Assembly (NCBI GenBank): GCA_028826165.1 | Contig: JAPDFW010000136.1 | Location: forward strand, 558,001-622,000 | Direction of reading: 5' to 3' | Length of the DNA stretch: 64,000 nt | From: Anaeramoeba ignava BMAN | Taxonomy: Eukaryota > Protista > Anaeramoebae | Shown here: positions 11,420 through 46,526 of the stretch, piece after piece | Layout of the letters: each line of letters begins with the position of its first letter | Numbering within the stretch: position 1 is the stretch's first letter | Notes under the pieces: model-generated | Databases searched by the model: none | What the model saw: only the letters and a program-made list of their open reading frames with translations | Told to the model about the DNA's origin: nothing | Position numbers and translations under genes: made by a program

Positions 11420-12429
11420 ATGGAAGAACCATTTAAAATCCCCAATATCCCAAATTCACTAGATTCAAAAGAATTATATGAATTTACAACAATGCCCAAT
11501 CATTCACTCTGGATGAATTCCACCAACATGAATCTACCGAGTCATTTACTAACTAACTTTCACCAAACACACCCCAGTTTTCATTCACACAACATGCACC
11601 ATTTCTTGAATAATAATCTGAACCATTATTATTTGAATCATCACTTATCCATTTCTAATTCAAATCCAAATGTTGATCAAAATTTGAAGAATTTCAATCC
11701 AACTTGTAATCCAAATTATAATCCAAATTATAATCCAAATATGCCCCATTCTCCATTGAATTCAACTAATAATCCAGCTTGTAATCCAATTTATAATCCG
11801 ATTTATAATCCGATGTTTAATCCGTTTATTAATTTTTATTTTGATGCTACTTATAATATCGATCAAAAAAGTAGTATTATAAACATAAGTGAGATTTCGA
11901 ATAAAAACAAAGATTTCAATAGTGAGATCGAAGATCAAAACGAAGGAGAGATAATTAATAAAGAATTAAATCCAAAAAAATTAAAAACAAATAAAAAAAA
12001 ATTAAAAGAAAATTTAAAAGAAAATAAAGAAAATTTAAAAGAAAATTTAAAAGGAAATTTAAAAGAAAATTTAAAACAAAATAAAAAAGAAAATAAAGAA
12101 CAAAATATAAAAGAAAATAAAAAAGAAAATAAAAAAGAAAATAAAAAGGAAATAAAAAAGATTCAACAACTCAAATCCTTCAAAATTTTTTAATGAGACC
12201 CCTTTCTTCAAATGAAAAACCTAATCGAAAAAACCCTTCTTTTGGTGTTATTATTGATTTATATCTTAAATCAAAAATTCGTAACAAAAAAAGTAAATCA
12301 AAACCAGCAAAATATCAAATTAATTTGAAAAAAAACGAAAAATTAATTTCTTCAGGTATTTGTTCTGAAGAATTGTGTGGTTTTATTTTGGACAGAAAGT
12401 ATCTAACTAAAAAGCCAACAAAAAATTGA
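11420..12429 (+). CDS. Orphan protein (N/H/P-rich N-terminus, KEN repeats, basic C-terminal domain) with one apparent -1 frame break near 12150
   Basis: ATG 11420 (MEEPFKIP). The frame of the 12193 ORF is open upstream to ~12145 (NKKDSTTQILQNFLMRP), so one missing A in an A-run joins both ORFs. Confidence 0.6.
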
Positions 12430-16200: not shown

Positions 16201-17530
16201 TCAAATGATTGAAATGTTTTTTTGATCATTTCGCAATTCTTCTCGTGGTTTTTTTGTTGGAATTGCTCCTTCTTTTTCATAAATCATAAGTCGAGAAACT
16301 TTGTTTTCTAAAATTAAACCTTTAAGATAAATTGAAACTAAATTTTCTGTTGGATTTCTTGCTAATTTCCTTAATTCTTGTTTTGTAATTAGTTTTGACC
16401 AAGAACCGCCTTGATTTTTTGAATAGAAACTATCTCCATATGATTCTGTTGAATCACCTCCATTTCCTTGATTTGAAATGCAATTTTTTTGGATTGTTTT
16501 TTGATTGTCTTTTTCATTCGAAGTATTTTTGCGTAAATCGACTAGATTCTGAACAAAATTATCAATGATTTTTTGTTGGTTTTCAACATTTTGCATTGTT
16601 TCCATTTCAACCGAAATTGTTTCTTTTTTTTCTTCTGGATAATCTTTCGTTAACTGGATATTTTTTTTCTATTGCTTCAAATAAAGCTTTTATCCCAGTT
16701 GGGAAATCTGGTTTTTCTTGTGATTCCTGAAGAGCAAAGAAAGGTTGTGAATCATCTTGATTTTGTGAATTTGTTGAATCTGTGAGATTTGAATCCTCTT
16801 CAATCAAATTTTTTTCATTATTTTTTTCATTGTTTTTGTTTTTATTGTTTTTTTTGTTTTTGTTTTTATTTTTATTTTTATTTTTATTGCTTTTTTGCGA
16901 ATCTTCGAAATTTAGTTTGCGATTAGAAACGGTTGTTTTTGTTCCGATTGTCTGAGTTGTTAATGGTTGAAAGACTGGTGGTTTTTTATAAGCGGTTTGC
17001 ATTTTCCGAAGATCATAATTTGTTGTTTTATGCTTTTTAGAATTTGAATAACTTTTTTGATTTGGAATTGGATTTGGATTTGGATTTGGATTTGGATTTA
17101 AATCTTTGCGTTTGGAACGATGATATTTTTTTTGGGTTGGTGTTGTTTTGGATGGGCTTATCGAAAATAAACCACTTTTTGTTTTTTGGATTTTTGAATT
17201 GGATTTTTCAAATTTTGATGCGAGAGTTGTTGAAAGAGATTGTGATTTAGATGAAATGGGAAGTTGTGGATAAGGAGATCTGGGAGTTGTGTTGAATGGA
17301 TGTGTGTTATTGCTTATTTTGTGAATTGAAAGTGGTTTTGGAATTGAAAGAGGGTTAAAAGAGTTTGGTGTATTTTGTTTTTTTCTAACAACAATAACTT
17401 TTTTATTTTCAAGTTTGTTATTAGAAGATGTTGATAACGAAGAATTTTTTTGAGAAGAATTTTTTAAATCAGGAGATAATTGAAAAGAAAGAATAGATTG
17501 TTGAGCAATTTTAGGTGAAAAAGTTTGCAT
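16201..17530 (-). CDS. Orphan S/T/K/N-rich protein with one apparent +1 frame break in an A8 run near 16665
   Basis: The frame of ORF 16201-16605 is open upstream (NIQLTKDYPEEKKETISVEMETM) and overlaps ORF 16607-17530; removing one A joins them. Confidence 0.6.
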
Positions 17531-19974: not shown

Positions 19975-20454
19975 TTTTATTTGTTTATTTTTAAAAAAAG
20001 TTTATTTAAAAATATAAAAAATAAAGGTAAAAATATTTTTGATCTTTTCTTATAAATTATTTTTAAGTAAGAACCATTTTTAAAAATTTTTAATTAAAAA
20101 TAAATAAAAATAAAAATAATTTTTAATAAAAAATATTTTTATTTTTTCATTTATAATTTATTTTTATTAAATTAAGAACCATGTTTTTTTTTTAATTTGT
20201 TTTATTTTTTTTTTTTAAAAATTTTTGATCTTTTTAAAAATTTTTAACATCTTTTTCTAAAAATATCTCATTTTAAATCATCATTAATTTTTATAAATTA
20301 ATTAAAAATAAAAATTTAATTTTAAATTAAATTTTAATTTAAATTTAATTAAATTATTTTTTTATTTATTTAATTTTAATTTTTAAATTCAAAAAAATTT
20401 ATTTTATTAATTTATTTTTTATTTTATAAATTTATTTTTATTTTATTTATTTAT

Positions 20455-23400
20455 TTATTTTAAATTAATTCAAAATATATTTTAATTAATTTTATTAATT
20501 AATTATTTATTTATTTATTAATTAGAAAATGAAATAAATATAATTAAATTTATTTATTATTAAAATATTATAATTTAATTAATATTTGATTTATAATTTA
20601 TTTATAAATTAATTCAAAATATATTTTAATTTAATTTTATTAATTAATTATTTATTTATTTATTAATTAGAAAATAAAATAAATATAATTAAATTTATTT
20701 ATTATTAAAATATCATAATTTAATTAATATTTGATTTATAATTTATTTATAAATTAATTCAAAATATATTTTAATTTAATTTTATTAATTAATATTTATT
20801 TATTTATTAATTAGAAAATAAAATAAATATAATTAAATTTATTTATTATTAAAATATCATAATTTAATTAATATTTGATTTATAATTTATTTATAAATTA
20901 ATTCAAAATATATTTTAATTTAATTTTATTAATTAATATTTATTTATTTATTAATTAGAAAATAAAATAAATATAATTAAATTTATTTATTACTAAAATA
21001 TTATAATTTAATTAATATTTGATTTATAATTTATTTATAAATTAATTCAAAATATATTTTAAATTAATTTTATTAATTAATATTTATTTATTTATTAATT
21101 AGAAAATAAAAATAAAAATAATTAAATTTATTTATTATTAAAATATTATAATTTAATTAATTAAATTTATAATTTATTTATAAATTAATTCAAAATATAT
21201 TTTAAATTTAATTTATTAATTAATATTTATTTATTTATTCAATTAGAAAATAAAATAAATATAATTAAATTTATTTATTATTAAAAAATATTATAATTTA
21301 ATTAATAATTTTAATTTATTTATAAATTAATTCAAAATATATTTTAATTTAATTTTATTAATTAATATTTATTATTTATTTATTAAAAAAATAAAATAAA
21401 TTAATTAAATTTTATTTATTATTAAAATATTATAATTTAATTAATATTTTAATTTATAATTTATATTTATAAATTAATTCAAAATATATTTTAATTTAAT
21501 TTTATTAATTAATTATTATTTATTTATTTATTAATTAGAAAATGAAATAAATATAATTAAATTTATTTATTATTAAAATATTATAATTTAATTAATATTT
21601 GATTTATAATTTATTTATAAATTAATTCAAAATATATTTTAATTTAATTTTATTAATTAATATTTATTTATTTATTAATTAGAAAATGGAATAAATTTAA
21701 TTAAATTTATTTATTATTAAAAAATATTATAATTTAATTAATATTTAATTTTATTTATTTATAAATTAATTCAGGTAAAAATATATTTTAATTTAATTTT
21801 ATTAATTAATATTTATTTATTTATTAATTAGAAAATGAAATAAATATAATTAAATTTATTTATTATTAAAATATTATAATTTAATTAATATTTGATTTAT
21901 AATTTATTTTATAAATTAATTCAAAAATATATTTTAATTTAATTTTATTTATTAATAATTATTTATTTATTTATTAATTAGAAAATAAAATAAATATAAT
22001 TAAATTTATTTATTATTAAAATATTATAATTTAATTAATATTTGATTTATAATTTATTTATAAATTAATTCAAAATATATTTTAATTTAATTTTATTAAT
22101 TAATAATTATTTATTTATTAATTAGAAAATAAAATAAATATAATTAAATTTATTTATTATTAAAATATTATAATTTAATTAATATTTGATTTATAATTTA
22201 TTTATAAATTAATTCAAAATATATTTTAATTTAATTTTTATTAATTAATATTTAATTATTTATTAATTAGAAAATAAAATAAATATAATTAAATTTATTT
22301 ATTATTAAAATATCATAATTTAATTAATATTTGATTTATAATTTATTTATAAATTAATTCAAAAATATTTTTAATTTAATTTTATTAATTAATATTTATT
22401 TATTTATTTAAAGAAAATAAAATAAATATAATTAAATTTATTTATTACTAAAATATTATAATTTAATTAATATTTGATTTATAATTTATTTATAAATTAA
22501 TTCAAAAATATATTTTAATTTAATTTTATTAATTAATATTTATTTATTTATTAATTAGAAAATAAAAATAAATTTAATTAAATTTATTTATTATTAAAAT
22601 ATTATAATTTAATTAATATTTAATTTATAATTTATTTATAAATTAATTCAAAATATATTTTTTAAATTAATTATTTTTATTTATTAATTAGAAAATAAAA
22701 TAAATATAATTAAATTTATTATTTATTAATTAATTTGAATTAATATTTAAATAATTTTAATTATAAATTAATTCAAAATATATTTTAAATTAATTTTATT
22801 AATTATTATTTATTTATTATTTATTAGAAAATGAAATAAATTTAATTAAATTTATTTATTATTAAAATATTATAATTTAATTAATATTTAATTTATAATT
22901 TATTTATAAATTAATTCAAAATATATTTTAATTTAATTTTATTAATTAATATTTAATTATTTATTAATTAGAAAATAAGATAAATATAATTAAATTTATT
23001 TATTATTAAAATATTATAATTTAATTAATATTTGATTTATAATTTATTTATAAATTAATTCAAAATATATTTTAATTTAATTTTATTTATTAATATTTAT
23101 TTATTTATTAATTAGAAAATGGAATAAATTTAATTAAATTTATTTATTATTAAAATATTACATAATTTATTTATAAATTAATTCAAAATATATTTTAAAT
23201 TAATTTTATTAATTAATATTTAATTATTTATTAATTAGAAAATAAGATAAATATAATTAAATTTATTTATTATTAAAATATTATAATTTAATATAAATTT
23301 AATTTATTTATTTATAATTAATTCAAAATATATTTTTAATTTAATTTTATTATTAATTAATTTATTATTTTATTAATTAGAAAATAAGATAAATTTAATT

Positions 23401-23745
23401 AAATTTATTTATTACTAAAATATTATAATTTAATTCATCATTGATTTATAATTTATTTATAAATTAATTCAAAATATATTTTAATTTAATTTTATTAATT
23501 AATATTTATTTATTTATTAATTAGAAAATAAAATAAATATAATTAAATTTATTTATTACTAAAATATTATAATTTAATTCATATTTGATTTATAATTTAT
23601 TTATAAATTAATTCAAAATATATTTTAATTTAATTTTATTAATTAATATTTATTTATTTATTAATTAGAAAATGAAATAAATATAATTAAATTTATTTAT
23701 TACTAAAATATCATAATCTAATTCATATTTGGTTTATAATTGAAT
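20455..23745. repeat. Satellite A: ~144-bp near AT-only unit, ~23 copies
   Basis: The C of marker ATTCAAAATATATTTT falls at 20471, 20615, 20760, 20904, 21048 (spacing 144-145). Confidence 0.92.
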
Positions 23746-23825
23746 TAATTTTTTGTTTCTATTTAAAGATTAATTTCATTTTCCAAAAAAAAAAAATTTT
23801 TAAAAAAAAAAACAAACAAACAAGT

Positions 23826-24425
23826 TTATTCAAATGAAAAAAATAAACACCAACCAAATCCAAAAATAGAAAACCAAAAACCATCTCCAAACAATTTAAA
23901 CAAATTAGAAAAAAAAACAAAAGTTAAAAATAAAAAATGACTTGAAAGTAAAATAAAAATTCCAATTTTTCGATCTCCAAAACAATAAGTAAAAATTCCC
24001 CAAAATAAAACAATAAAACTTAAAGTAACAAAAACAGATTTGAAAGAGGAAGAAAAAGAAATGAGATTTTGAGCAAAAAGAGAATCAATAAAAGAAAAAC
24101 CATGCAATAAAACCTTCACAAATCCATCCAAATAACCAATAAAAAGACTTGTATGATTTTGACTATTTTTAATCAAAATTTCTCGAGATTTTTCATATAA
24201 TTCTCTCATTTCAGTATTTCCTCTAAAAATCACACTTGGAATAAACGTTTTTGAACCTGAAATCAAATACGGGTGAAATAATGAAAAAATATAAAAAGCA
24301 ACTCCTAATCTCGACCAAACAGAAAAAAATATTTTTTCACTTGTTTTTAAAAATGTAATTGTAATATGAATAATTGCTGTTAAAAGAATTAATAAAAGAA
24401 TTAAATCAATTAAACTGTAAATCAT
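23826..24425 (-). CDS. Small multi-pass membrane protein, unknown family
   Basis: 199-aa ATG-initiated ORF with several hydrophobic segments; ends ~80 bp from satellite A; may be truncated. Confidence 0.5.
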   Translation of the reverse strand: MIYSLIDLILLLILLTAIIHITITFLKTSEKIFFSVWSRLGVAFYIFSLFHPYLISGSKTFIPSVIFRGNTEMRELYEKSREILIKNSQNHTSLFIGYLDGFVKVLLHGFSFIDSLFAQNLISFSSSFKSVFVTLSFIVLFWGIFTYCFGDRKIGIFILLSSHFLFLTFVFFSNLFKLFGDGFWFSIFGFGWCLFFSFE

Positions 24426-24673: not shown

Positions 24674-27600
24674 TCAAATTTTGATCGATGCAATTTTTTG
24701 GAAATATTTAAAAGCTTCAACACAATGTTTTGCTTGAATATTTTCTGGGAAATATTCTTCAATTTTTTCAATTGATTCATCATATTCCTCATCATCAAAA
24801 AATGTAAGACTTAATAACTCTCTCAATTTTTTATCAGGTCGAATTTTTTCAGTTAAATAATTCTCAATAAAAAACTTCCAAACTTTTGCCAAATAAACAA
24901 CATCAAGATGCTTAATTGCGTCGCATAAATTTTCTTGATAAAGTTGCCTGAATGGTTGTTTGAATTCTTTTGGAATTTTCTGATAGGGATCAACAAAGTA
25001 CTCTTTGAATTTTTTATCCAAAAATTGAATGTGTTTCAATTTGGCCACTTTTTGGAATGTTGGCGAAGTGTGTCCAATTTCTTGGATTGAGTTGTTTTTG
25101 AGAGTATTCAGAACATAATCGAAAATAGTTTCTTCGAAAAATCTCTTAGTGAGATGACTTGTTTCAATTTTCTGGATTGCTTTTAATGTTTGAACAATGA
25201 ACGCCTGACAATTTTTTGCTTGTGAATTTTTTTCCAAATTGGCAATAATTTGGTCCCATTCATGAGTTGGCAATCCTTCAAAGTAATCTTCCACATTTGC
25301 GATTTGGGGTATTTGAATAATCTCTTCTTCTTGTGAATTTGCAAATTCAAAACGATCAATTTTGATTGCGATAGGAACAATAGTTTTCAATTGAATCGTT
25401 AATTGAGATGCTAAGTTGGATTCGAGCATCGAAAGAAAACTTGAATCAAGCGTTCTGTTCTTTAAATTGCGCTCAATTTCTTCCACATCAAGATCAAAAA
25501 GAGGCAATGAATATTGCTTTTTTGTTGGGATTGGGAACATCAAAGTGAAACTACCATTTGTTTTTTCTTCGTGTTTGAGTAATTGAGTTAATTGTGATTT
25601 TAATAAGTTTTGGATGTTAATTGCATGTTTGATCAAAATTCGGATAAATGATTGTTCCTTTGTATCTCCGGGCAAGCAATAAATTAGGCTGTTTTGCTGT
25701 GAAATGGCTAAATTTTGATCTTTTCGGTCTATTGACTCAATCATTAACAAATAGTCCAAATCATGGATACACAAATTCCAGAACCTCTCGAAATCTGGGT
25801 AAATTTCTTCAATATTTTCTTTTTGGATAAATTCAGAAATCTTCATTGAACGCGCATTTTCTTCTTTGATTTTCCCATTCATCCTGTTGAAAATAATACT
25901 CGCAAACAACAAAAATTTTGGGAACAGATGAAGAATCCGAAATTGCTCCAAATTCTCAAATAAAAATCTAAGTAATTCTTTGTTGTTTGGATCGGTACTT
26001 TGAAGAAAGATGTAATTGCAAACTTTGATATATTTCATTTCTTTGGAAAATACAAAACATCCACTCCTTCTTTTTTTCATTACGAACCTTTTCTACCAAT
26101 TCTGTTTTGGCAACAGGATTATTTTGGATTCTTTTCCTAATTGTTTGATCCCATTTATCATAGATTTTCGCAAATTTGGTTTCAAATAAAGTTCGTCCAT
26201 CGGTTTTTTCGAATGATTCAAAACGTTTCATTTTTCTTGATTGTGTGAATTTTGGGATTGCTTTCATAAGAATTTCATGATAATATATTTTTGTTTCTTC
26301 ACTAGAGAAATTTAGTAATCCAGACAAAACTGCGAAATCTGTCTTCAAATGATCCAAAAGTATCGCGATCATTTCTGGTTGTGAATTTCCCCATGAAATA
26401 CAGTTGTTTATTAATTCTCCAAACCTTCGTGACGCATTTTCTAGTGTGATTACAAATGGAAGTAATAAAGAATGAAGTATGATTCGACAAATTCGAAATA
26501 CAACAGGATTCAAATTTCTCACAGTATAAAGTGGATTTATATTTGGATATCGGCTAATGCAATATGAATAAGGCTCTAAAACCCAATCTTTAATTTTAGT
26601 TTCAAAATTATTTTGCGGATCTCTTAAATTAATCTTCATTTGGCAAACAGTGCAATTTTCTTCCATTTTCTCTTCTCCAATTTCGTAGAAATTCACATGG
26701 TTATTTTTGCATAAGAAACATTTTCTTCCATTTTCAATTAGATACTCCGAAAATGGAACCGGTGTTATTGTTGGCCAATATATAGAAAACAGTTGCTTGA
26801 CTACTTGTTCTGAATTTGGATCTGTTCTCAGATCAAACAAATAATTTGATAATGCATAAAAAGGTTCGAGTTGTAAATTTTGGAATATCTCCATTGTGGG
26901 GAGAATTATTTCAAGTAATATCGGTGAAACGATCTTTTCTCTTACTATTCTAATTGAATCGTAAATATGCTCCAATACCGGCGAGGTATTATCATCATAC
27001 TCCATTTCATCTGGATATCCTTTTTCTACAAATTTTCTGAAAACTGAGGTTTGCTCTAATATTTTACTTTTTGATATGCTCCAATTAGATAACAATAGAC
27101 CTTGGAAATCAATAATTGCATTATCAGTTATCTCCATTTGTTGAATAGTTCTTAACAAAGATTCGGGCCCGTTTTGCTTATACACATTTTTCAGTAAAAA
27201 TAGAAGCCAGTTTTCTCCTTTTCCATTTAGTGCAAATTCTGGTCTTTTTTCAAAGAAATCTTGTGGTTTTTCGTTCAATTGAATTCGATTTAGGACAATT
27301 TGAATGATTTTCGAAAAACTGAATGGCTTCGTGAGAATAAGAAATTTGGGGTCTTGTTCGTAATCGTAATCATCAATTTCATAATCTCCATCATCTTCAT
27401 TTTCATCATTTTCATCATCATCATCATCATCATTTTCATCATTATTGTTATTGTTATTGTTATTATCATTCTCATTAAATAAAATTTTGAGAGGGAATGC
27501 TGAACTCAATTTTTGTGTCAAATTAGGTCTATCTTCCAAAAACTTCACACAATTGACAGCAATCCAATTATATTTATTCCCCTCAATATCCCTTTCATCA

Positions 27601-30600
27601 CAATTGTTCAGTAATTCATCCAAACCTCCAACTACAGATGAATAAAACCGTTCATCATTTTCTGCACTAAATAATTTTGCCAAAAATGTCAAAATGACAG
27701 GATTTCCAACTGAATCCGAATTAATATTCAATCCACTAAGAAAGCGAATATATCGATTCCCAATAATTTTTTCCAGGAAATTCTTAACGTTTGATGAAAC
27801 CAATTTGTGGTGATGATCTTCTAATTTTGTGAAATTCAAAATTAATCTTTCTGCAACAATCCTTCCAAGTTGTTCTAAAAATAATGAAGAATAACGAATT
27901 ATTTTGAAAAATTTTTCTTGTTTTTCTTTGATTTCTTTTTCATTGAAAATGGATTCGAAATGATCTGCCTTTTCTACTCTTGTTTTTGCAAATTGGACAT
28001 CTAATTTTTCCGTTTTTTTCATTCAAACTTTCTATTATACTGTATGAAACAATTCTTGAATCTAGTTTTTGATCTGGAATTTGTTTTTGGCACAATAAAT
28101 GATCCTCGCTAGAATCAAAAAATATTTTTTCCATTTCTTTCATTGAAGTAAAATTCTGCAAAACCCATTGCTGATCATTCCAAATATATCCTCTCAGTTC
28201 TTCCCAAATTGGTGCGAATATTTCCTCAAAATAATTCTCGAATTTTACTCTTTTTTGGAATGATTTATCAATAAATGCACTCATTTTTGCTGTTGTTCGA
28301 TTTGAGCGGAATGCGGATACAACTTGTATGCTATATTTCTTGATCAGAATATGGTTCCATTTATTAATCAATGACTTGATTTTGAGCGAGTTTGATTCTT
28401 GTCTTTCACTTGTTTTTTGTAAAAGATCCACGAGATTATCGAAGTTGGATTCAAAGAAAATGATAATCTTTTGGAAATTTGGATTTTTTTGATATGCTTC
28501 GACATCCAACTTGACTAAAATATCGAAACAAAAATCAAGGAACTGAAAACCTGAAAATATAACATTTCGGCTTCGATAATTGGAACTCTCAAAAAATTTG
28601 TTGTCAATGGTTCTCATCTCGTTCCACATAATCATTATCAGATCTAAGTAAGGCTTAATATCATGAGAAAAAGTTTTGTGTATTTGAACCAATAAATCTT
28701 TTGCATTTCTCAAGTTTGGTTTCATGGATTTGATCATTTCCCAAACTTGAATATTCAAATGATTCAGAAGCTTATCCTGTTGTTCCTCTGTCAAATGAAA
28801 AGCGTTGGAAATCTTTGAAATATCTTTTGGGTTAAATCTGCATATGTATTCTCGTCTCGGCAAATCTCTTTCTGGATTACAGATAACAATTCTTTATTCT
28901 CTGGTTTTTCATATTTGTTTTCTTCGATGATAGAATATATGTGATAAGAAAATGGGGACCGGGAATTTGTGAAATCATCCGCTTTTAATATATGGAACAC
29001 TGGAAGATGCGTTTTTGCAATAATTGTTTGCCATAAACGGGCTACATTCTGATTTTGTGAAATGAAAAGATCAAGATTCTGATTTCTGTTAATATTGTTC
29101 AAAAATATTGAGAATATTTGAATCGTTTTCTCTCGGAAATGGTGAAAAAGAAATGAGTTGAAAGATTGATAGTTTTCTTCATTCTTCCATTTTTCTCGAA
29201 TAATCTTGATCAGATCCCATTCATAAATATTAATTTGCTCCTCAACTCCTGATTGGATCATTTCGATCAGAGTATCATAAACAATCTTTTGGAACGCATC
29301 TGTTTGTAAGAGCTTATGAATCCTATCGAGAAGAGTTGAGTACTTGGTGGTGGTGGAATCTAAGAAACGGGATAAAGACATTCCTGCAATATTAGGAAGA
29401 AGATCTTGGATTCTACGCTGATTGTTTCTGAAAATGCTTTCAAAAGTGTTTGTTTCTTGTCTAAATTGAACCAAGGAAATCAAATTGGATTTTGGGCATA
29501 AGTTCTTCAACATAATAATATTCCCAAATATCTTCGAAGGAAAAAGAAAGATCAGAAACAGTTCCATTCGGAGAAAGATGAATAAGGAAGATGACAAAAA
29601 ATTTCTGTGTTGAGAAATAATACTCTTTTCTTTCCTTTTGATTGGCAAATTTAATATCTTTGTTTTTATCATTTTGCTGAAGGAATTCGTATATTGAAGT
29701 TTCCATTAGATATTTTGATTGATAGAAAATTTGTGATGCTTTTTCATTTGGGTTAAAGTGGATGATTAAAGCATGCTTCTCGTCATTCAAGTTTTTGTTC
29801 TCTCTATTGAGGAATTTCTCTTTAATCTCGGATGCCAGATTTTGGTCTGTTTCAATATAGAGAAGATCGATTGTTGAGAATGTGTATCCTTGAGGATATT
29901 GAAGGTTTTCATAATTCGGTGAGTGCGTGAAAATAACTGAATTGTGAATTTGCTTTGGAGCGATCTCCTTATGAAATAGATCATCGAAGCTTTGGTGTTG
30001 GGATTCCAAGTAATTGGTGCATTCTTGATCAAGTTTTTCCAGATCTTGAAAGCCGGTTTGAGCTCCTTGAAGTTTTTGTTGATTAATGAAATATTTTAGT
30101 TCAATAATCTTATCAACTTTGCAAATTCTAATCCAATAATGCATTCCAATTTGGTTCAGTTTTTGAAGATTCATTTCCTCGAAATTATTATTGTTGTTGT
30201 TGTTGTTATTGTTATTGTTATTATTATTGTTATTATCAAAAGATTTTCTTTTGTATTGATTTTGGATCTTGATCCCAAGCGTATCAAGCAAATCAGGATG
30301 GTTGATCACGAGGAAATTGTCTGGATGAATTGATTGAAGTGATACTTTTTTCACTTTCTCGAAAATTTCTTTCTGATTGGAGACAAATTGCTTAATAAAT
30401 GGGTTCTGAATAAAATCAGAGGGAATAAAAAGTTGTTTCTCAAAACGATTCAAAACAGCTGGTGATTCGTTTTGATATGCTTCCATTTTGTCTATAACAA
30501 CAAGAACGCGAAAGTTTGGATTGATTTGGATAGAATCTGAACTATCTCCAAATGATATACGCGCAAAAACTTTATCTTCAATTTGTGCATAATTTTGATT

Positions 30601-33600
30601 GAGGAGATCATAAAGCGGTTCAAAAAGCTGCTTGTTATTGCATAACACAATTGTTTCTCCCAATCTCACTGACAACTCAACTTTTTTCAAGTTTTGAATT
30701 ATTCGAAGAAAGTTTCGATCTTCAGCAAAAGATGATCCAAACATTACAGCACTTTTGGTCTCAATTTGTTGCAAAATGACAGGGAAAAGAGCCAAATTAT
30801 CAACTAATATCATCAAATGTCTGGAAAATTTGTGAATTTCATCATTAGTGAGATTGTACTCCTTCCTTTCTTCATTAGGAAGTAACTTCCCCTTGAGATT
30901 TTGTTCAATCAAGACTCGTGTTGTGGGAACGAAATCAGGAACTTGTATCCCTAATATTTGACATATTTTCGATTCCAAGTTACCAAGAAATTCGGGTTTT
31001 GATCCAAAATTCCTATAGATGAAATTCCAGAGAAGTTTCGGATTTCGATAATTTTCATGAAATTTAGAAGTCGACTTTGCAATCATTTTGAGCAGGTAAT
31101 AGAAGTCTCTGAGTCCATAGTAATTTTGGTTGATTTTCTGTCCATGAAAATTGAGAGGATTGCTTTTTTGGTAATCAATGATGAGTTTGTATACTTCAGC
31201 TAATTTCTCTGGAAAATCTGCAGATGTTCTTGATTGCAAAGAGCTGAGAATCATTGTAGCAGTTTTTTGGAGTTCTTTTTTTGTTGGTTCTAGTCTTCTG
31301 AGTAAAATACCCCGATTTGTATTTGCTGGATCAAGTTTCCAATTCGATATAGCAAGAACAGCAATATCTGCATTTTTGCGGGCTTTTTTCTTATCCTTTT
31401 CGCTTTTTTGATTGTTATTGTTATTGTTATTTTCATTTTGATTATTATTATTATTATTATTGTTATTGTTATTTTCATTTTCATTTTGATTTTGATTTTG
31501 ATTTTGATTTGGCTCTTTTGATTTCTCAAGCAAATGCTTTTTGTCTGATTTTTCAAGTTCAGCATGAAGTACTTTCAAAGGCAAATGAGGACTTAATTCT
31601 GCTAATGCAACTTCATCCAAAATTACAACAGGTATTGTTGTTTCTCCATCTGTTTGAGTTGCAAAATCTCGAGCAGAATCAAAAATTTCTTGGATTCCTT
31701 TTGAAGTTGTCATTGGGGAGCATTGGAGATAAAAAGGTTGTAATGATGGAATTTTCCATCTTGAAATAAATGTGTTTTCACTTCTTGGGCGTAAAATATG
31801 CATCAGTAATTCAATAGAAAGAGATTTTGATGATCCTAATTTAAATAAAGAAACAGAAATGAAAAGCGTTTTTAGTTATGATTTCAAATTGCAATTAGAA
31901 TTTTTGAATTATTTACCTGGTTTGCCAACAATAAATAATGGAATTTTCACATAGCAAGAGATAAATATTAGCAATATATTTTCCTTCAATGCCTCGTTGA
32001 TTGCAACTGTGGGGTCATGCTTCTGGATTTCTAGAGCATTGATTAAATTTTCCTGAATATGCGTAACAATTTCTTTGATGGTTTTATTGGATTGAATACT
32101 TTTTGATAACTTGGAATACTCATTTTGGAGATCACTCAAGAAACGATCTCTCACATCCCCAACAAATCGAGTGGCATAGCAAACAAAGAGAGATAGAATA
32201 ACTGCATAATGTATTTTTTTGTTTCTTTTGATATGAAGTAATTTTGTCCCTTCTTGAGTTGAGATTAACCATTTGAAAATTCTCAAAGTCCTTGAGGCAT
32301 CTCTCAAAGAAACAGAGCTTTCCTGATCATCTGAATATTGACGAACAAAATTATGTGACTGGCAAATGATCATTGTGAAATTCGCGCCAATTTCAAGAAG
32401 CTTTTCTTCGGTATAATTACTTGAAATTTCACTCAAAGTTTGCTTCACCATCTCCGAGATATAAACTCTTTCAATATTACTTGTTAGACTTCCAAAGTCG
32501 TAGATATCTTCCAAAAACGAATCTGGAATAGGATGAACACGATAAACAGCTTGTTGGATTTTCTTCATTTGCTGCTGTTCTTCTCCGTAATGAAAAGTCA
32601 GAATCCCATTTGGTAATGTATCACTATCATCTTGATAGCTTTGATTATTCTTGGGTTTCTCTTTCTCATTTCCAACCTTTTTTCGAATTGAATAGTCATG
32701 TTCGATATTCTGGATTTGATTAATTTTAGGTTTTTTGTCATGTTTTTGCGGGAAAGATGAATGATCTTCTTTTCGTAAACGATAAGGATTTGCTGCAGCT
32801 AATAGTTTAATTTCATCAGATAGTGGCTGTCCATTTATGCAGCGATCAATCAAAATTTCTTTGAATAACATAATGCAGTCTTTGGATGCTGTATTGAATT
32901 CATCAAAGAATATGTAAATGAACATCAATCTTTCATTTTGGATTTTTGCTTTCGCTTTTGTAATGGTTTTGATGATGTCTTTCTTTTTCGTACCTCCATG
33001 AATATTTTTGATTATTAACTTTTGTTTCATCACTTCTTCGATCAAATATTTGATCAATGCTGTTTTGCCGCATCCTGTTTCTCCAAGTAAAATAACAGGT
33101 AATCCTGCAAAAAGCTTGTACTGAATATAAACCATCTTCATAAAGTTATCTGATGTGAGAACATATCTTTTTTTTCTTTGAGAAAAATCCTCATTGGCTT
33201 TTTCTTTTTGTTCTAACAAAAGCATTGGAGTTGGATTAAGTGCATTTAGAGTTCGGAGAACATATTCTTCCTTGATTCCAACAAGATCAGTTTCACTTGA
33301 TAAACGATCATGAAAATGAAAATTATTGATTTCCAAAATGGGTCTTAGTTCCTCTGAAAATTGACTTTTCATCGCATTTGGATTCCTTCCTATTAAGTTG
33401 ACCCCATTGATTTCCTCGTTTTCGCTCATAAAGAGAACAAGTAAAGACAAATCCCTTGTTTTCCATGGTCTTCTCTCAAGAAGTAGTTTGGATAAATCCT
33501 CGAGTTCTGTCATATTAGGATCAGATGATTTGGTAACCCAGTTGATAGAGCGGGAAACCATATTAGTCACTGAATACATATATGATTGAAAAAGATCGTT

Positions 33601-36600
33601 GATAAACCGCATTCCGAAATCGCTTGGATTCCATTCGTCTTCCCAACTCTGCGAAATTTTATTAAGCTCAGAAATTTTTTGTTCGACAATCCTCTGCCTT
33701 GCTTCCTTGAATACATCAGATTCCATATGGTCAAAAATTTGTGGTCCAAAAAAATCAAACATTCGAGCATCTACATCGCTTTGGAAATCTGTGGATATAA
33801 TAACCTCATCAAGACTCTGAGGTTTCTGCAAAAAAATAAGTTTGGCTGATCTCAAATCGAAGAAGGTGTATTTGATTAATGCATTGACGTGACTTTTCAT
33901 TATCGTCCAGAAATTTGATAAGATCCGAAATGTTGATTGCGTATTTATTGGATCGTGCTGAGTAAATCTTTCTAGAGTTTTTGTTAAGAACAGTTGTTTA
34001 TCCGTTTTAATGTTATTTACGATAATCATTCGGTCTTCTCGTTGAGTTGCGTTAAATTGTGTAAATTGGTTTTGTGCAACAGTCCAAAAATTTGCGACTT
34101 TCTCAAGCTCAAAATCTTGAATCAACTTAATTTCATTCGATTGTGTGATTTCGTATTTGTCCAATGAAAAGACATTTTTTTCAAATTTACATTTCACTTC
34201 TTCCGCATATTTTAAAGGGGAGAAATGGATCAATCCATTCTCTGAGTTATAAATTCTACTACTTGGTATTTCCACTGCTAATTCGAATGATTGGTTGAAA
34301 ATCCAAACTAAATCATTTGCTCGATCAATTTTCCTGCGATTTTCAATAGATTTCCACATCAATAATTCCCAAAGAAAGTCAAGAGTTGGTCTTTCAGGCA
34401 AATATGGGAATTCCACATGAAGATATTTTTGGGAAAATTTAATTGTTGGATCCTTGACAAGATCTCTAATTCTTTTGATTGCTTCAGAAGCTGTTCCCCT
34501 CTTAAGCAATAGAGAGAAATAGAAATAATTGTTTCCTTTGTTCTTTTGATAGCATTGCTTGCGGATCTGGTAACTTTTCCCCAATCCCGCAAACTCAGAT
34601 GTGAATACCCTCACTTTTCCATAATCATTCTGACTCTGTTGGAAAATTTCCTGAATTTCCTTTCTTTCCAAAAAATCCAATCTCTCTTTTATTTCCCCTT
34701 CGCGGAAGGCTTGAATCAAATTAAGAACTGAATATAACTGACCTGAACATAACAATACCAATGGATGTGTTGTTTTATAATTGATTTTCTGAAGCTGCTT
34801 TATCAGAAAGTTGTTGTTTTTTTTGCTCAGATCCTGGGTGTACAAAACAGTGAAAAGAAACTTGTTTTGAGAATTTGCTAATTCAGTGTTGTAGAATTTA
34901 TAGACATTCATAAAATTACGTATATCATCCTCAGTTGTTGAGCTTCCACAAATCATCACAGTTTCTCTGAGAGGGAAATGGTCTGAATAGCAGAAATGGA
35001 AAGAAGTCGCAATGTCATACACCTGTGTGCTGTCTTTGAAGTTGTAAATATAGATTTTAGGATCAACAATTGTTCCTTTTCTTTGTGTAAAGAAGATTTG
35101 GTATTGATTTGATAACTTGTCAATTTTTTGATTTGTTGTTTTCGCGTGAATTTGAATAATGCGTGTTCCGATGTGGTTGGGGATGCTTAATAATTTGACT
35201 AATTCCGATGTGAAATGGTGAATGTTCAATTCAGAAGCAGAATCATTTGCAATCTGAATGGTTTTCAATTCTTTGAGATCTTTTTCTGCTAATTTTGGAT
35301 TAACTAAATTGAACAAATACAGAACATCTTCAGTTTTTCCTTTGAAATGAAAATTATGAAGAATCGAAAAAAATTGTTCCTTTGAAAAGAAGCAGATGAG
35401 AGGGAAATCTTGATAAACTTTGTTGATTTGGTTTTCCCATTTCTCGAGATCGTTTCGCAGGTCTTGTTGCAATCTCAACAGACTCCTTTTCCAGTCGCTA
35501 GTTGAAGATAAAACCAGATTATGTTCATATCCATCAAATCTATATTTGAAATGTGCGGAGTCAATCAGTTTTTGGAACAGATGCGGAAGATCCTCGATTA
35601 TTGGGAATAACTCTTGGAAATTGCTAATATATTTGAGATCAAATTCCTTCTGCGCAACCCTGATTTGGGAATCTAAAACTGTTTCTGTTCCTTTGAATTC
35701 TTGTGTGTTTTGTGTGTTTTGGAAAATGTAGTACATTTCGTACAAATCTTTCAAAAATATCGATTCTTTTTGGATTTGGCACTCGAAATTCTCTTTCTTT
35801 TTTTTAGGTGAGAATTGGAAGATGAATTTGCATCCTTCCGAAAACATTTTCTTCACTCTTTCTCCGGCTCTTTGTTGTATTGTTTGCTTTTTTTCTTTTA
35901 AGGTTTCAAGAAACTCGTGGAAAGTTTGATGTAAAAATCCAAAATCAATTTTTGCTTCTTTGGGAGCATTCTCCACTGAGGTTTTAATTTTCTCTAAAAA
36001 TTCATCGAGACTCTTGAAAGGTTTCTCGGAGTAAAGATACGATTTCATCCGATCTCGAAGAATTTCCAATGATCTCCCAGTTTGGAAAAATCCTAGAATT
36101 TCCAAGAAGACTTGAATCAATAGAGGCCTTAAATTGCTTGTCATTCTGACTTTTCAACCATTTAATAATTCGATCATCAAAATACTCCACTTCTTTCATT
36201 TCGATTGATCCATCATCATTTTCATTTTGGATTTCCTTTTCATCGTCTTTTTCTTCTTGAACAATCTTGCTTCTTTTCGGCATCAAAGAACCAATAAAAT
36301 CAAGAATTTGAGGTGATAAGTTTCGAGATGTTTCCAGTGTTGTTTTCAATATTGTTGCGACTTCAGATAATTTGTTTTCGTGCTGGAATTTGGGATCAAT
36401 AAATTTTGGTTTTTGCTCAAAATCAAAAAGAGAACAGAATTTTTGGAAGGAAGGAAAAGTTTCTTGATTTCTCATAATATATCTATAATCTCTAATATTG
36501 CTTTCATCCATTTCCATCTCTTTTGAACCAGGAAAAAGAGCGTGATCCAATTCGAGAATTTCCATTGATAGTTGTTGATCAGTCATTTGTAAGGGGAAAA

Positions 36601-38996
36601 GATTCTTTAATTCCTTGAATGTGATTTCTTTGGTGTAAATTTCGGTACGTATTTGTTCCCAATTTGTTTTGGAAACTAAAATGAGATTTTTTGTAATATC
36701 AGGCAAAGATAACTCAGTGTTTGGAGGGATTTTTTCGCATTCTTTTTGCCAAATTTGCATAAAAATAGAACTTGGTTGTAAGAGATCCAAAGTTTCCAAA
36801 TATCTAAAATCAAGATTTAAATCATCGAAAAAAGTATTGATGGAAGATAATTTGTGTTTTTTCTTCTTATTATCTGGGTCACTCTCCGGGAATGTTCTCT
36901 TGTGTGATTTTATCTAAAACTTTTTCAATCTTTTTGTCTTTCACAAGTATGTGAAAGTTTCGAAGGTATTCTGCAGAAAAATTAAGCAATAACTTCTCTT
37001 TTTTATCGAGTTCATCTTTTTTTGCTTTTGTTTCTTCGAAATTGAGATCTTGAGAAAAAAGTTGAAAAAAATCATTGTATCTTGGAAGATTATTATAGTA
37101 ATCATAATATTCACTAATGGTTACTGTTTCGGGAAGCTTCAACCTTGTGATTTTACTCGTGATATCTCCTTTCCATTTAAGAAGGAGTTTATAAAATTTG
37201 CTTTCATCTTTCTTTTCTTTGTCAACCTGGAATTTTTCAATATTGGAAAGCCATCTCATTGTCGTAGTTAATTTCATTCTTTCATTTTCTTTCAATTGTT
37301 TCAAGAAAGAAAAGAAATCACCGGTATACATATCCATACTTTGTATTTCCAAGTGTTTTTCCCAAAATGAAATTTGGAAAGGATCAAGTGGAATTTTTTT
37401 GAAGAATGTGCTCGTCATCAACAACCTGATCTGCAGAAGCATGTTTGAAATAAACTGAATATGTAGTTTATGATTAAATCCTGAATTTTTTGATTTTTTT
37501 TCATTTGGAAAATCTCGTTGATCGCAATTTGTTGAAGCATAAAAATGCTTTCGAGTTTCCGAAATTTCTGATTTTCAAAATTTTTTTGAATGATGTTTTC
37601 AAGATGTTTTTTTTGAAAAAAATAAAATTCTGTTCCCATATGCTCAACCAGCGGATCGTTGTTTCTTTTCCTTTGTGTAATTTCGGTTTTGATTTTTTTG
37701 AAATTTTTTTCACAAACTTGGTAAAATTGTTCCCAGAAATTAATCCAATTTTTTAGTTCTAAAAATTCGAGAAACTCCATTAAAGAATAAATCTTTTTTT
37801 GTTTAAATTTGAGAACGAGATTGGCGAAGAATTGATCATCTTTGAGTAATTCCGGGAAAAAAACGATTTTTCAAACTATTTTTTGCTAAAAGACGGATAA
37901 AATGCTCCCAAGTGAAGCTTTGCGAAAGAAATTGGGAGTTGAGTAATTGTTTGAGCATAGAAATCAAGTTTCTGAAATATTCGATTTCCAATTCTTTTTT
38001 TTTGGGTGGATAAACAGGGAACCCTTCTTGATTGAATAAATGATAGAGTGGGTAATAATGAACTAAGTAAAACTTATCGCTTCTTTTAGCACCAAATGTT
38101 AAAAGGAGATGAACTTGACTCATAAAGCGTGTCTGTTGATTGGCATTTAAATCGTTTAGGTTGTGAAATATATCATAAATGAGTCTGAAAAAATTTCTCC
38201 AGTTGAACAGTAGTCAACTTTGTGGAAATTAAAGCTTCTGTCACTTTTTCGATTTTTGCAAAAGTTATGGTAATAAATCAAAAAAATTCTCAAAATAAAT
38301 GGGAAATTTGGATCAGATAAATTATTCAAAAATTGAGAATTTTGAAAAAATTGTGTCCAAAAAGGATGATTTCTTTTTTCATCTTGCGTGAAAAGTGAAT
38401 CAATTTGATCCACACCTTTGTTAAGTTCCAAAAATTGGGCTTGAGGATTCTGTATTTGTTGCTGAATTTGATTTGTAAAACAGAATAAAAAATTATTGAG
38501 AAATGATAATGCCATTGCGCTCTTATCGAATTTTTTATCTTCAGAAGTTAATCCGATGAATTGGAAAAAACCCTCCCAAAAATGCTTATTGACTTCTTCA
38601 AAATCAAATAAATGGAAAATGTATCGAAATGGTTGAGGATCTTTTGAGGGATTTTTTGAAATTTGCATTTTCTTTTGATCTTTTGGATTCCACTTTTTGT
38701 GGATGTTCAGAATAAATGAGATAATTAAATGAGTTTTTCTTGCTTTTTTGTTTTATGAAGTTCATTATCCACACATTAGAATTTGGATCATTTTGCTTAA
38801 TTTCTATATTACGAAACCTTTTTGCATTTGTTTTAACTTGAAAATTTTCCACTTTTTTTTCTTTTTTTTTCAGTTTTTGTGTGAGAATATATTTTGCTTT
38901 TTCTGCATCAATAAATGAAAAAATATAAATCATTTCTTGTTTTTGTCTTTTCTTTTCTTCTTCTTGTCTTTTCTTTTCTTCTTTTTTTCTTTCCAT
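24674..38996 (-). CDS. RNF213/mysterin-like giant AAA+ ATPase with degenerate RING and RZ-finger remnants (~4700 aa if frame breaks are corrected); frame-broken in this sequence
   Basis: RNF213-type motifs VFTSEFAGLGKS, PVILLGETGCGKT, FFDEFNT, AAANPYR, VYRVHPIP, YDFGSL, PLFIVGKPG|SSKSL (across GT-AG intron 31836-31916), QCSPMTTSKGI, VVILDEVALAELSPHLPLKVLH, ISNWKLDPA..NRG, PLYDLLNQNY, LNRFEKQ. ORFs tile head to tail on the minus strand from 38996 to 24674. Confidence 0.88.
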
Positions 38997-39154
38997 AATG
39001 ATAGATAAAAAAACAATTTAAAAAATTGAAAAAATGAAAAATGAAAAATGAAAAAAAAAAATTTTTGGTTTTGTTTGTTTGGGCAAATTTTTATTTAGAA
39101 AAAGAAAAGAAAAAGAAAAGTGGAATTTGTGTTTTCTTTTTAATAATTTGTTTT

Positions 39155-42213: not shown

Positions 42214-45200
42214 TTACTTTTTTGATTTTTCTTTAGTTGGTGAAGTGTGTGTATTTGTAGTTGGTATTTCTTGATTTGTCTGGATTTCTTGTAATAAATT
42301 TTTTTTTGTCCGATTTTGGATGAAATATATTGGTTTTCGAATTTTTTGTTTTGTATTTGAATTTAATTGTGTTTTTGACTTATGAATAAAAGGATGTTGA
42401 TCTCCAATCGATAGAAAATGACTTTTTTTTTTTGGAAATAGATTAGAAGGGAAATTCAAAATGAATTATTTTTTCACTTACTTTTTAGAAATATCTTTTG
42501 AATCTTGTTCTTTCTTTTTTGATTTAGATTTTGATTTTGATTTTGATTTTGATTTTGATTTTGATTTTGATTTTGAGTTTGATTTGAATTTATATTTTCA
42601 TTTGATGAATGACTTTTTTGACCAATATTTTCTAAAGAGTTTGTTCGTTGTTTTGAAACTACTCTAATTGGTTCTGGTTTAGATTTTTCCACTTCTTTTT
42701 GGATATCATTATATTCAGTTTTAAAATTTCTAACATTAACATTTTTTTTGGATAAAATATTTTGATCGAAATTATTTTCTTGTTGTTTCTTTGGACTATT
42801 TTCTTCGTTTAAAATATCTGGAGTATTTGTGCTATTTGAACTTTTTTCCATCATCTCTTGCTATAAATTGTTTTGAATATTTTATTGATTATTTTGAATA
42901 TTTTATTGATTAAATTAGAAAGAAAATTAATTATCTACTTCAAGAATAATCCAATCATATTTATAATCATAAACAAAACCTTCTCGAATAAATAAATCAC
43001 GAAATAATTTACGCAAATAACTATAATCTGGTTTTTCATCAAAATGCAAGTTTCGACAATATTCAAGATATGTTGCAAATTCAGCTAAAAAAATATTTCC
43101 ATTTTAAATTTAAATTTTAATTTTAATTTTAATTTTAATTTTAATTTTAATTTTAATTTTGATTTTTAATTTGAATTTTAATTTAATTTTAATTTTAATT
43201 TTAATTTTAAATTTGATTTTGATTTTGAATTTTAATTTTAATTTTAATTTTAATTTTAATTTTAATTTTAATTTTAATTTTAATTTTAATTTTAATTTTA
43301 ATTTTGAATTTTAATTTTAATTTTAATTTTAATTTAATTTTAATTTTGAATTTTAATTTTAATTTTAATTTTAATTTTAATTTTAATTTTGATTTTGATT
43401 TTAATTTTAATTTTGATTTTAATTTGAATTTGAATTTGAATTTGAATTTTAATTTTTGATTTTTACATGGAAAACCTTTGCATAATTCTGAAATTGGAGT
43501 TGAAAGTTTCATCTCAGAAATTCGATCGTATTTTTGTTTAATATCTTTAGCTTGTAATCCTTGCCAAGGAAGACTTCCTCTACAAAAATATACTAACAAA
43601 AAACCAATACTTTCAAGATCATCTCTTCGACTTTGTTCTTTTAATTTTAAATGATTAAATAAATTGTTTTGTTGAAATGAATTATTATTTGAACAAATTG
43701 AAATCAAATACCAATTCCTAAATGTGTATTTAAAGATACAAATCTTGCTGTTCCAATTAAATGCCTATCATTTCTATATTTAATATGTTCAAGATTAATA
43801 GGATCTCGATATTTCTTTGATAATCCAAAGTCCACAATATAAATTGTACTTTTTTTATTTCCTCTTCCAATTAAAAAATTATCTGGTTTGATATCTCGAT
43901 GTATATAATGTTTTAAATGAACATATTCAATACGATAAAGCTTTAAAAGAAATGCACAAATAACCCGATTTTATAAAAATAAATTGTTATATAAATTATT
44001 ATATAAATTATTTTATAAATTATTATATAAATTATTTTATAAATTATTATATAAATTATTTTATAAATTATTATATAAATTATTTTATAAATTATTATAT
44101 AAATTATTTTATAAATTATTATATAAATTATTTTATAAATTATTATATAAATTATTTTATAAATTATATAAATTATTATATAAATTATTTTATAAATTAT
44201 TTTATAAATTATTTTTATAAATTATTATATAAATTATTTTATAAATTATTTTATAAATTATTATATAAATTATTTTATTATAAATTATTATATAAATTAT
44301 TATATAAATTATTATATAAGTTATTATATAAATTATTTTATAAATTATTATATAAATTATTATATAAATTATTATATAAATTATTAAATAAATTATTATA
44401 TAAATTATTATAGAAATTATTATAGAAATTATTTTATAAATTATTATATAAATTATTATATAAATTATTATATAAATTATTATATAAATTATTTTATAAA
44501 TTATTATATAAATTATTATATAAATTATTATATAAATTATTTAATAAATTATTTTATAAATTATTATATAAATTATTTAATAAATTATTTTATAAATTAT
44601 TATATAAATTATTTAATAAATTATTTTATAAATTATTATATAAATTATTTAATAAATTATTTTATAAATTATTATATAAATTATTATATAAATTATTAAA
44701 TAAATTATTATATAAATTATTATATAAATTATTATATAAATTATTATATAAAATTATATAAAATTATTATATAAATTATTTTATAAATTATTATATAAAT
44801 TATTTTATAAATTATTATATAAATTATTTTATAAATTATTATATAAATTATTTTATAAATTGTTTTATAAATTATTATATAAATTATTTTATTTTATAAA
44901 ATTATTAAATTATATAAAATTCCCGTATAAATTATTATATAAATTATTATATAAATTATTATATAAATTATTTTATAAATTATTTTATAAATTATTTTAT
45001 AAATTATTTTATAAATTATTTAATAAATTATTATATAAATTATTTTATAAAATTATTATTATAAAATTATTTTATAAATTATTTAATAAATTATTTAATA
45101 AATTATTTAATAAATTATTTTATAAATTAATTATAAATTATTTTATAAATTATTTAATAAATTATTTTATAAATTATTTTATAAATTATTTTATAAATTA

Positions 45201-46526
45201 TTTTATAAATTATTTTATAAATTATTTTATAAATTATTTTATAAATTATTTTATAAATTATTTTATAAATTATTATATAAATTATTTAATAAATTATTTT
45301 ATAAATTATTATATAAATTATTTAATAAATTATTTAATAAATTATTTTATAAATTATTTAATAAATTATTATATAAATTATTATATAAATTATTTTATAA
45401 ATTATTATATAAATTATTATATAAATTATTATATAAATTATTATATAAATTATTATATAAATTATTATATAAATTATTATATAAATTATTATATAAGATT
45501 ATTTATATAAATTGTTTAATAAATTATTTAATAAATTATTTTATAAATTATTTAATAAATTATTTAATAAATTATTTTATAAATTATTATATAAATTATT
45601 TAAATAAATTATTAAATTAATTATTTTATAAATTTATTAATTATTAAATAAATTATTAAATAAATTATTATATAAATTATTTAATAAATTATTATATAAA
45701 TTATTATATAAATTATTATATAAATTATTTTATAAATTATTTTATAAATTATTATATAAATTATTTTATAAATTGTTTTAATAAATTATTTTATAAATTA
45801 TTTTATAAATTATTTTATAAATTATTATATAAATTATTAAATAAATTATTATATAAATTATTATATAAATTATTTTATAAATTATTATATAAATTATTAT
45901 ATAAATTATGTTTTATAAAGGCTTTCATATTTTTCTTGATAAAATGCTTCATTAATTTTCTTATAACTTTTGAAATTCTTTCTTGAATCTCTTTGTTAAA
46001 CTCCAAATTAAATATTCATAAAATTCTCCATCAGAATAAAAAAAGCAATTTTAAAAAAAAAATTTTTTATTGAATAAAAATGATACCAATTCATCAGCAA
46101 TCATAAGAATAGTTTTCAAGGAAAATTTTCTTGAACAAAAATTAAACAATTCTTCAAGATTTTGACCTAATAAATCCATTACCATTACTCGAAAATCTGC
46201 TTCTTGTCCAAACCATCTTACTTTCGGAATTCCAACGCTTCCAGATAAAGCACGATAAACTCTGTTCTCATAAAAAAGTTGTGGATGTGTTATTCCAATT
46301 CTTTCCTAAAAATGATATTTTTTTTTCAATTCAAAATTTTTAATTAATTTTAATTTGATTTTTTTATTTGAAAAGTGTTGTTTGTTTTTTAATCATTTTT
46401 TCTTTTTACAAGTTTTATTGCTACTTTTTCTTTATCTTTAACATTAATTGCTTTGTAAATTTTTCCAAAAGAACCTGAACCAATTTTATGGCGAAGTTGA
46501 TATTTATTTTTAACCATTAAAGCCAT
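42214..46526 (-). CDS. CK1: Casein kinase 1 family kinase
   Basis: [98 protein letters not shown]. Exons 46526-46410, 46305-46087, 43940-43712, 43637-43467, 43084-42939, 42860-42482 and probably 42421-42214. The last join needs one extra A near 42515, so the 3' end is less certain. Confidence 0.92.
43085..43466 (-). repeat. CK1 intron with (TTAAAA/TCAAAA)n
   Basis: GT-AG intron; hexamer array. Confidence 0.88.
43975..45915. repeat. 12-bp tandem repeat (ATAAATTATTWT)n inside the 2.1-kb CK1 intron 43941-46086
   Basis: Directly visible; source of spurious YKLL/INYF ORFs. Confidence 0.92.

Follow-up and report, generated by a model that had tools for sequence, protein, structure and literature searches.

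Is a gene whose reading frame breaks again and again bypassed by recoding, repaired by editing of its messenger RNA (mRNA), decayed, or simply misassembled? The question is raised by an RNF213-like gene on the minus strand of a 64,000-nucleotide (nt) stretch of the genome of the protist Anaeramoeba ignava BMAN (contig JAPDFW010000136.1, positions 558,001 to 622,000). This whole stretch is here called the window, and positions are counted from its first letter. The gene runs from an ATG at 38996 to a stop codon at 24674-24676, about 14.3 kb, and an earlier note on its sequence had offered programmed +1 frameshifting, single-nucleotide deletion editing or insertion-biased consensus error as causes of its many frame breaks. 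With a probability of roughly 0.92, the breaks were introduced by the genome assembly, and the organism has an intact RNF213-like AAA+ gene with two exons. The deposited consensus would accordingly contain 13 spurious single-base insertions, eight of them supported by sequencing reads and five predicted, and once these are discounted the gene comprises about 4,742 codons. Contigs built from reads contradict the assembly at every break in exon 1, and its frame is whole once they are followed.

Frame structure of the gene

A three-frame map of the minus strand, made from 39017 to 24677, gave an open-frame path of 0>1>0>1>0>1>2, then an intron, and then 2>0>2>0>1. The map bore out the structure described in the earlier note, i.e., one true intron and ten further frame junctions, seven of them +1 and three net -1, and it found the three third-frame segments reported at the net -1 junctions to be real. 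The statement that the gene has no isolated in-frame stop also stood, as a nonsense codon is required at none of the ten junctions. At each junction the open frames overlap by 31-241 nt, and between the 3' junctions they extend over 304-684 codons.

The segment from 31916 to 31836 is a true spliceosomal intron, which splits a P-loop-like motif (VGKPG/SSKS). In the closest paralog, located on contig 93 of the assembly, an open-frame boundary near 678664-678674 falls in the same place. From the alignment of these two genes, the position of the intron seems to be common to both and thus to be shared within the family. The coordinates of all features are collected in Table 1.

Read-derived contigs lack the extra bases

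Five sequencing runs contain the stretch. Four of these (X1-X4) have 82-84% of the sampled words and the fifth, X5, has only 18%, suggesting that X5 is a noisy long-read run; X3 belongs to a second study, and the other four runs share one sample. Contigs derived from the reads of X1-X4, with a depth of about 70-180, were placed on positions 33300-39100, which include six junctions and 2.7 kb of unbroken core. Contigs of X1 and X2 reach up to 170 kb and amount to 350-400 Mb in total, sizes that agree with shotgun DNA from a bacteria-containing culture but not with RNA.

In every run exactly one base is left out at each of eight sites (38681/38685, 38250/38251, 38183, 37857/37864, 37448, 37394, 36894 and 36084/36086), with X2 having no contig at 38250/38251. 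Every junction in the compared region has one omission, or two at both of its net -1 junctions, and the eight omissions are the only insertions or deletions (indels) among those listed for this region. Moreover, the read contigs of X1-X4 that cover 33310-35817 have no gaps. At the two net -1 junctions the omitted bases are 38250/38251 with 38183 and 37448 with 37394, in agreement with the proposal of the earlier note that each net -1 shift consists of two successive +1 events.

Removal of the eight bases turns exon 1 into one open frame that extends from the ATG to the intron donor. This frame has 0 stops in all 16 combinations of alleles, compared to 129 stops if the assembly is translated as it stands (in-script count). 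Chance restoration of a 7-kb frame by errors in the read contigs is impossible, and the error therefore lies in the assembly. Consensus error with a bias towards insertions, which the earlier note had called a strong explanation, was thus the right one, as read contigs from two studies make exon 1 a single open frame.

Two alleles at the sites of the extra bases

Between 33310 and 38844 the read contigs differ from the assembly by substitutions at 39 sites in 5.5 kb (0.7%), mostly transitions. Runs of one sample disagree among themselves at most of these sites, there are just 3 of the 39 at which none of the four runs has the assembly base, and from 37362 to 37488 every run gives a pair of allelic contigs with nearly the same depth. 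Two alleles are therefore present in the sample, of which the contig builder picks one per site, and the assembly is a mosaic of both. If the form with the extra base were one of two equal alleles, the 31 site-by-run observations without it would have a probability of about 5e-10.

Four of the eight sites vary among the runs as to which of the neighbouring bases is absent. The two read forms at such a site are one substitution apart, and the assembly has the two alternative bases in series. The disagreement among runs therefore reveals two alleles with a single-nucleotide polymorphism (SNP), both bases of which are written in a row in the assembly. A fifth site lies 2 nt from a SNP in a SNP-dense allelic bubble; at a SNP density of 0.7%, the proximity of five of eight sites to a SNP would arise by chance with a probability of 2.6e-6. 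The first site of junction 4 is likewise in a SNP-dense stretch, where the runs give two allelic contigs of 125 nt with two gaps each.

In the order in which the sites are listed above, the bases in excess are C or A, C or G, C, T or G, T, A, C, and T or C. No common slip motif was found at the eight sites, the contexts of which are TCCAAAAG, ATCGAAA, AGACTCA, CGTTTTTTTCCC, TATTTCA, CAAAAAAATT, GAACATT and TTTTTCCAAA. A methylation-type motif, GATC or ATCG, is present near four sites and not near the others. The slip sites had previously been placed for the most part at a C following T or C, which proved mostly wrong, with C, A, G or T being omitted, and the extra bases lie elsewhere than in the proposed UUU-C and CCC-N slip contexts. 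In the two TTCCCGGA sites the excess base is outside the CCC: at one it is a T or the G before it, and at the other it is a C that lies six bases upstream.

Table 1. Features of the RNF213-like gene, its junctions and the allelic forms of its extra bases, in window coordinates
Feature	Position	Strand	Basis or detail
RNF213-like gene, whole	24674..38996	minus	frame map, PDB phmmer matches, Pfam AAA_5 match, length arithmetic
Exon 1	31917..38996	minus	2358-codon open frame after eight read-supported single-base omissions
Junction 1, one extra base in TCCAAAAG	38681..38686	minus	X1, X2 and X4 omit C (38685); X3 omits A (38681)
Junction 2, first extra base in AAATCGAAAAA	38250..38251	minus	X1 omits G; X3 and X4 omit C; X2 without contig
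Junction 2, second extra base, C in CAGACTCAT	38183	minus	omitted by four of four runs
Junction 3, one extra base in ATCGTTTTTTTCCC	37857..37864	minus	X2 and X4 omit T; X1 and X3 omit G
Junction 4, first extra base, T of TTT in TTATTTCAAA	37448..37450	minus	read contigs
Junction 4, second extra base, A of A7 run in CAAAAAAATTCC	37394..37400	minus	2 nt from SNP 37392
Junction 5, extra base, C in GAGAACATTCCC, none of the CCC	36894	minus	omitted by four of four runs
Junction 6, one extra base in TTTTTCCAAA	36084..36090	minus	X3 omits C; X1, X2 and X4 omit T
Walker A motif GETGCGKT of AAA module, intact	33061..33084	minus	inside break-free core
Intron	31836..31916	minus	81 nt, GT..AG, 20% G+C, phase 1
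Exon 2	24674..31835	minus	four junctions with five predicted extra bases; frame map and paralog alignment
Junction 7 (+1)	29450..29476	minus	placed by paralog alignment
Junction 8 (net -1), two extra bases predicted	28800..28869	minus	paralog alignment
Junction 9 (+1), in CATTTTCAATGA, just after conserved CPIC..HF	27943..27950	minus	paralog alignment
Junction 10 (+1)	26005..26092	minus	placed only to open-frame overlap
Assembly TTTTTCCAAA			read forms TTTTCCAAA or TTTTTCAAA
Assembly TCCAAAAG			read forms TCAAAAG or TCCAAAG
Assembly ATCGAAAAA			read forms ATCAAAAA or ATGAAAAA
Assembly CGTTTTTTTCCC			read forms CGTTTTTTCCC or CTTTTTTTCCC

A probable origin of the extra bases

Such errors probably arose from the two alleles, which are present in the cells at about equal depth and differ at ~0.7% of sites, when a single consensus was made from noisy long reads of both. 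A SNP beside a short A/T or C run would then sometimes be written as two successive bases and not as one alternative; or else, a short run may be called one base too long. Polishing with short reads would then have left the extra base in place, as each allele would support a different one-base deletion, neither with a clear majority. An artefact of this kind can only add a base, and therefore all events would be +1 and would lack accompanying nonsense codons. The genome of A. ignava BMAN, which has 80.65% A+T, was assembled from MinION R9.4/R9.5 reads by ABruijn v1.0 and polished by three rounds of Racon, by Nanopolish and by two rounds of Pilon (PMC11550330), a pipeline that fits with residual indel errors.

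The pattern resembles that of early nanopore assemblies after short-read polishing in that most of the single-base differences lie within or next to short runs of A/T or C and long open frames are broken without added nonsense codons. Nanopore homopolymer errors are mostly deletions, whereas all eight of the errors proven here are insertions. A further difference is that at least half of these are tied to heterozygous SNPs, with both bases in series, a failure that is more specific than plain miscounting of homopolymers.

Comparison with paralogs

The RNF213-like family of this assembly (42.8 Mb, 147 contigs) is represented by 78 matched pieces, which are spread over more than 20 loci; at one of these the frame stays open for 4182 codons. 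Unbroken stretches of open frame in the paralogs served as separate queries. The contig-93 paralog, the closest, is about 50% identical in the core and collinear with the gene across seven junctions. No more than about 17 of its residues are lost between two frames at any junction, and two are lost at 36089/36081; the junctions are therefore single-base frame breaks and not introns. At junction 6, paralog alignment places the break within 36089-36081.

Tiny introns with a length of 3n+1 were considered as a cause of the +1 bias as well. This possibility was rejected because the sole true intron is an ordinary 81-nt one with GT..AG ends, the closest paralog is collinear without missing residues, and the difference from the reads is a single base each time.

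The third-frame piece of junction 8, KRYFKDF, pairs with SRYINDF in the paralog and has matches in the other two frames on both sides. This junction looks like the product of two extra bases, as at the two proven net -1 junctions, and the alignment thus extends to a third case the earlier proposal of paired +1 events.

A search for conserved break positions among paralogs, which had been suggested as a check on recoding and editing, found the breaks not to be shared. Seven junctions correspond to unbroken sequence in the closest paralog, the breaks of the paralogs themselves lie elsewhere, and the only boundary in common with the contig-93 paralog is that of the intron.

Open-frame breaks with overlapping frames were also observed in paralogs: contigs 70, 128, 46 and 57 have a single break apiece, and the contig-93 paralog has four or five. 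These breaks are mostly +1, and to judge by the frames they are probably assembly errors of the same kind. In several paralogs, stops were found inside the matches.

Points against assembly error and alternative explanations

Several points weigh against assembly error as the full explanation. The read comparison spans six of the ten junctions and eight of the 13 extra bases, with the four 3' junctions outside it. The types of the runs are only guessed, as "DNA?" or "?", and the evidence consists of contigs built from reads, in which rare variants are dropped, so that a minority form of the DNA could escape. Two of the sites, 36894 and 38183, have no homopolymer, no visible SNP neighbour and no alternative form in four runs; here one allele may have been picked four times, or the extra bases may be plain insertion errors. 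Finally, eight extra bases fall within 3 kb and none within the 6.6-kb AAA core, for which P is about 0.004 if 13 sites are random. Runs of at least five identical bases are more frequent in the N-terminal 3 kb (20.7 vs 9.5 per kb) and the SNP density there is 1.7 times that of the core, which explains the clustering only in part.

The alternative that survives best, although its chance is small, accepts the eight 5' breaks as artefacts and regards some or all of the four 3' junctions as real lesions, in which case the gene would be a young pseudogene (or allele) truncated in its C-terminal third. These are the junctions outside the read comparison, dead copies are to be expected in a family as large as this one, and several paralogs do have stops inside their matches. 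The 3' junctions, however, carry the signature of the proven artefacts, all of them being resolvable as extra single bases without any nonsense codon; the third-frame piece of junction 8 matches a paralog, and the frames between these junctions remain open over hundreds of codons. Neutral decay is also at odds with the read version of exon 1, open over its full 2358 codons, and with the lack of a required nonsense codon anywhere in the gene. That at least one of the four 3' junctions represents a real extra DNA base in an expressed gene, bypassed by +1 recoding, is very improbable.

It is just as hard to credit that the extra bases are real in a minority of the genome copies or cells (a degenerate copy or a subclone), and that the long-read assembler picked this form. 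Since contigs drop rare variants, absence from the contigs is not absence from the reads, but a consensus follows the majority, and the minority form would have had to be chosen at 8-13 independent sites amid majority SNP alleles. Furthermore, the occurrence of both alleles in a row at four sites is unlike a third haplotype.

Programmed +1 frameshifting or mRNA deletion editing at 13 sites, with all four runs being RNA or derived from another strain, is almost certainly wrong: the single direction of the events, the lack of nonsense codons and the guessed run types would agree with it, but the 170-kb contigs and 350-400 Mb totals of X1 and X2 are unlike RNA libraries, the runs share the assembly's own two alleles, the sites have neither a common sequence motif nor positions conserved in paralogs, and a SNP fully explains why the "removed" base depends on the allele. 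Recoding and editing, both offered in the earlier note, fall together because both need the extra bases in genomic DNA, and the DNA-type read contigs are without them at eight of eight sites. For +1 frameshifting, the extra base is missing from the DNA at these sites and no shared motif or conserved position accompanies it; for RNA deletion editing, the base is already absent from the DNA-type runs X1 and X2.

Comparison with known systems leads in the same direction. The many +1 changes within otherwise open genes that are typical of programmed frameshifting in Euplotes are what the raw sequence of this gene suggested. Shift sites in Euplotes share an invariant motif in which a stop codon follows AAA, and they are present in both DNA and mRNA, whereas the sites of this gene have neither a motif nor a stop codon, and the reads do not contain the extra base. 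Kinetoplastid U-deletion editing is similar in that it would remove single bases from the transcript and restore the frame. It differs in needing the base in genomic DNA, where the DNA-type runs lack it; in addition, known cases of nucleotide deletion editing are organellar, and this is a nuclear gene with a spliceosomal intron.

Relationship to RNF213

The likeness to RNF213 noted earlier was confirmed by phmmer searches against RNF213 structures in PDB, in which an open piece of 1414 amino acids (aa) gave an E value of 4.5e-41 and one of 804 aa gave 9.4e-39. A dynein-type AAA_5 Pfam match covers residues 1019-1107 of the 1414-aa piece, and by these sequence matches the gene has an RNF213-type dynein-like AAA core. 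No Pfam or PDB sequence match to a RING or RZ finger was found for the C-terminal part, which was searched as separate pieces, and a pattern search of paralog pieces from contig 70 and contig 93 gave no canonical RING. Where a RING would be expected, a conserved CPIC..HF motif is all that was seen of a zinc-finger-like kind; RCPICKNKSRKGRSFRIHF, at 27950-28000 on the minus strand, is kept in the contig-93 paralog as ECPICSQKVSEFKTHF.

Animal RNF213 (mysterin), a giant AAA+ E3 ligase, and the gene described here have in common a homologous AAA core, with an intact GETGCGKT Walker A motif in the latter, and a similar overall size (here about 4,740 codons). By contrast, the Anaeramoeba gene has no RING Pfam match and no RZ finger identified in the pieces searched, where only the conserved CPIC..HF motif is seen, and it belongs to a large family expansion of one protist genome. 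Within that RNF213-like expansion, it is an ordinary intact member.

Implications for the assembly

These results contain no new biology, but they remove a tempting false lead, an apparent 13-fold substrate of recoding or editing, and leave the gene intact. They also provide an artefact signature for this assembly, consisting of single extra bases, often at heterozygous SNPs, with the bases of both alleles in series. Other apparent frameshifts, "hidden introns" and pseudogenes of this genome should be weighed against this signature, and in the RNF213-like family, models based on the assembly are probably split in places or have false introns. The finding of two alleles at about equal depth, which differ at about 0.7% of sites, also bears on host ploidy, which was given as unknown in the genome paper, where haploidy was assumed for coverage estimates (PMC11550330); this locus, at least, is heterozygous.

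Other breaks and base composition in the window

Three more single-base breaks had been reported elsewhere in the window, and the report stood for two of them. Overlapping frames at A/T runs were observed at 12145-12190 on the plus strand (net -1, ~12150) and at 16610-16668 on the minus strand (+1, ~16665), and both breaks look like further assembly errors. The third place, at ~42470, is without frame overlap and may be an intron.

The window has an overall G+C content of 21.7% (78.3% A+T, close to the 80.65% of the whole A. ignava BMAN genome). Intergenic stretches of 2 kb within 20001-24000 and 44001-46000 have just 1.5-5% G+C, which is extreme even for this genome.

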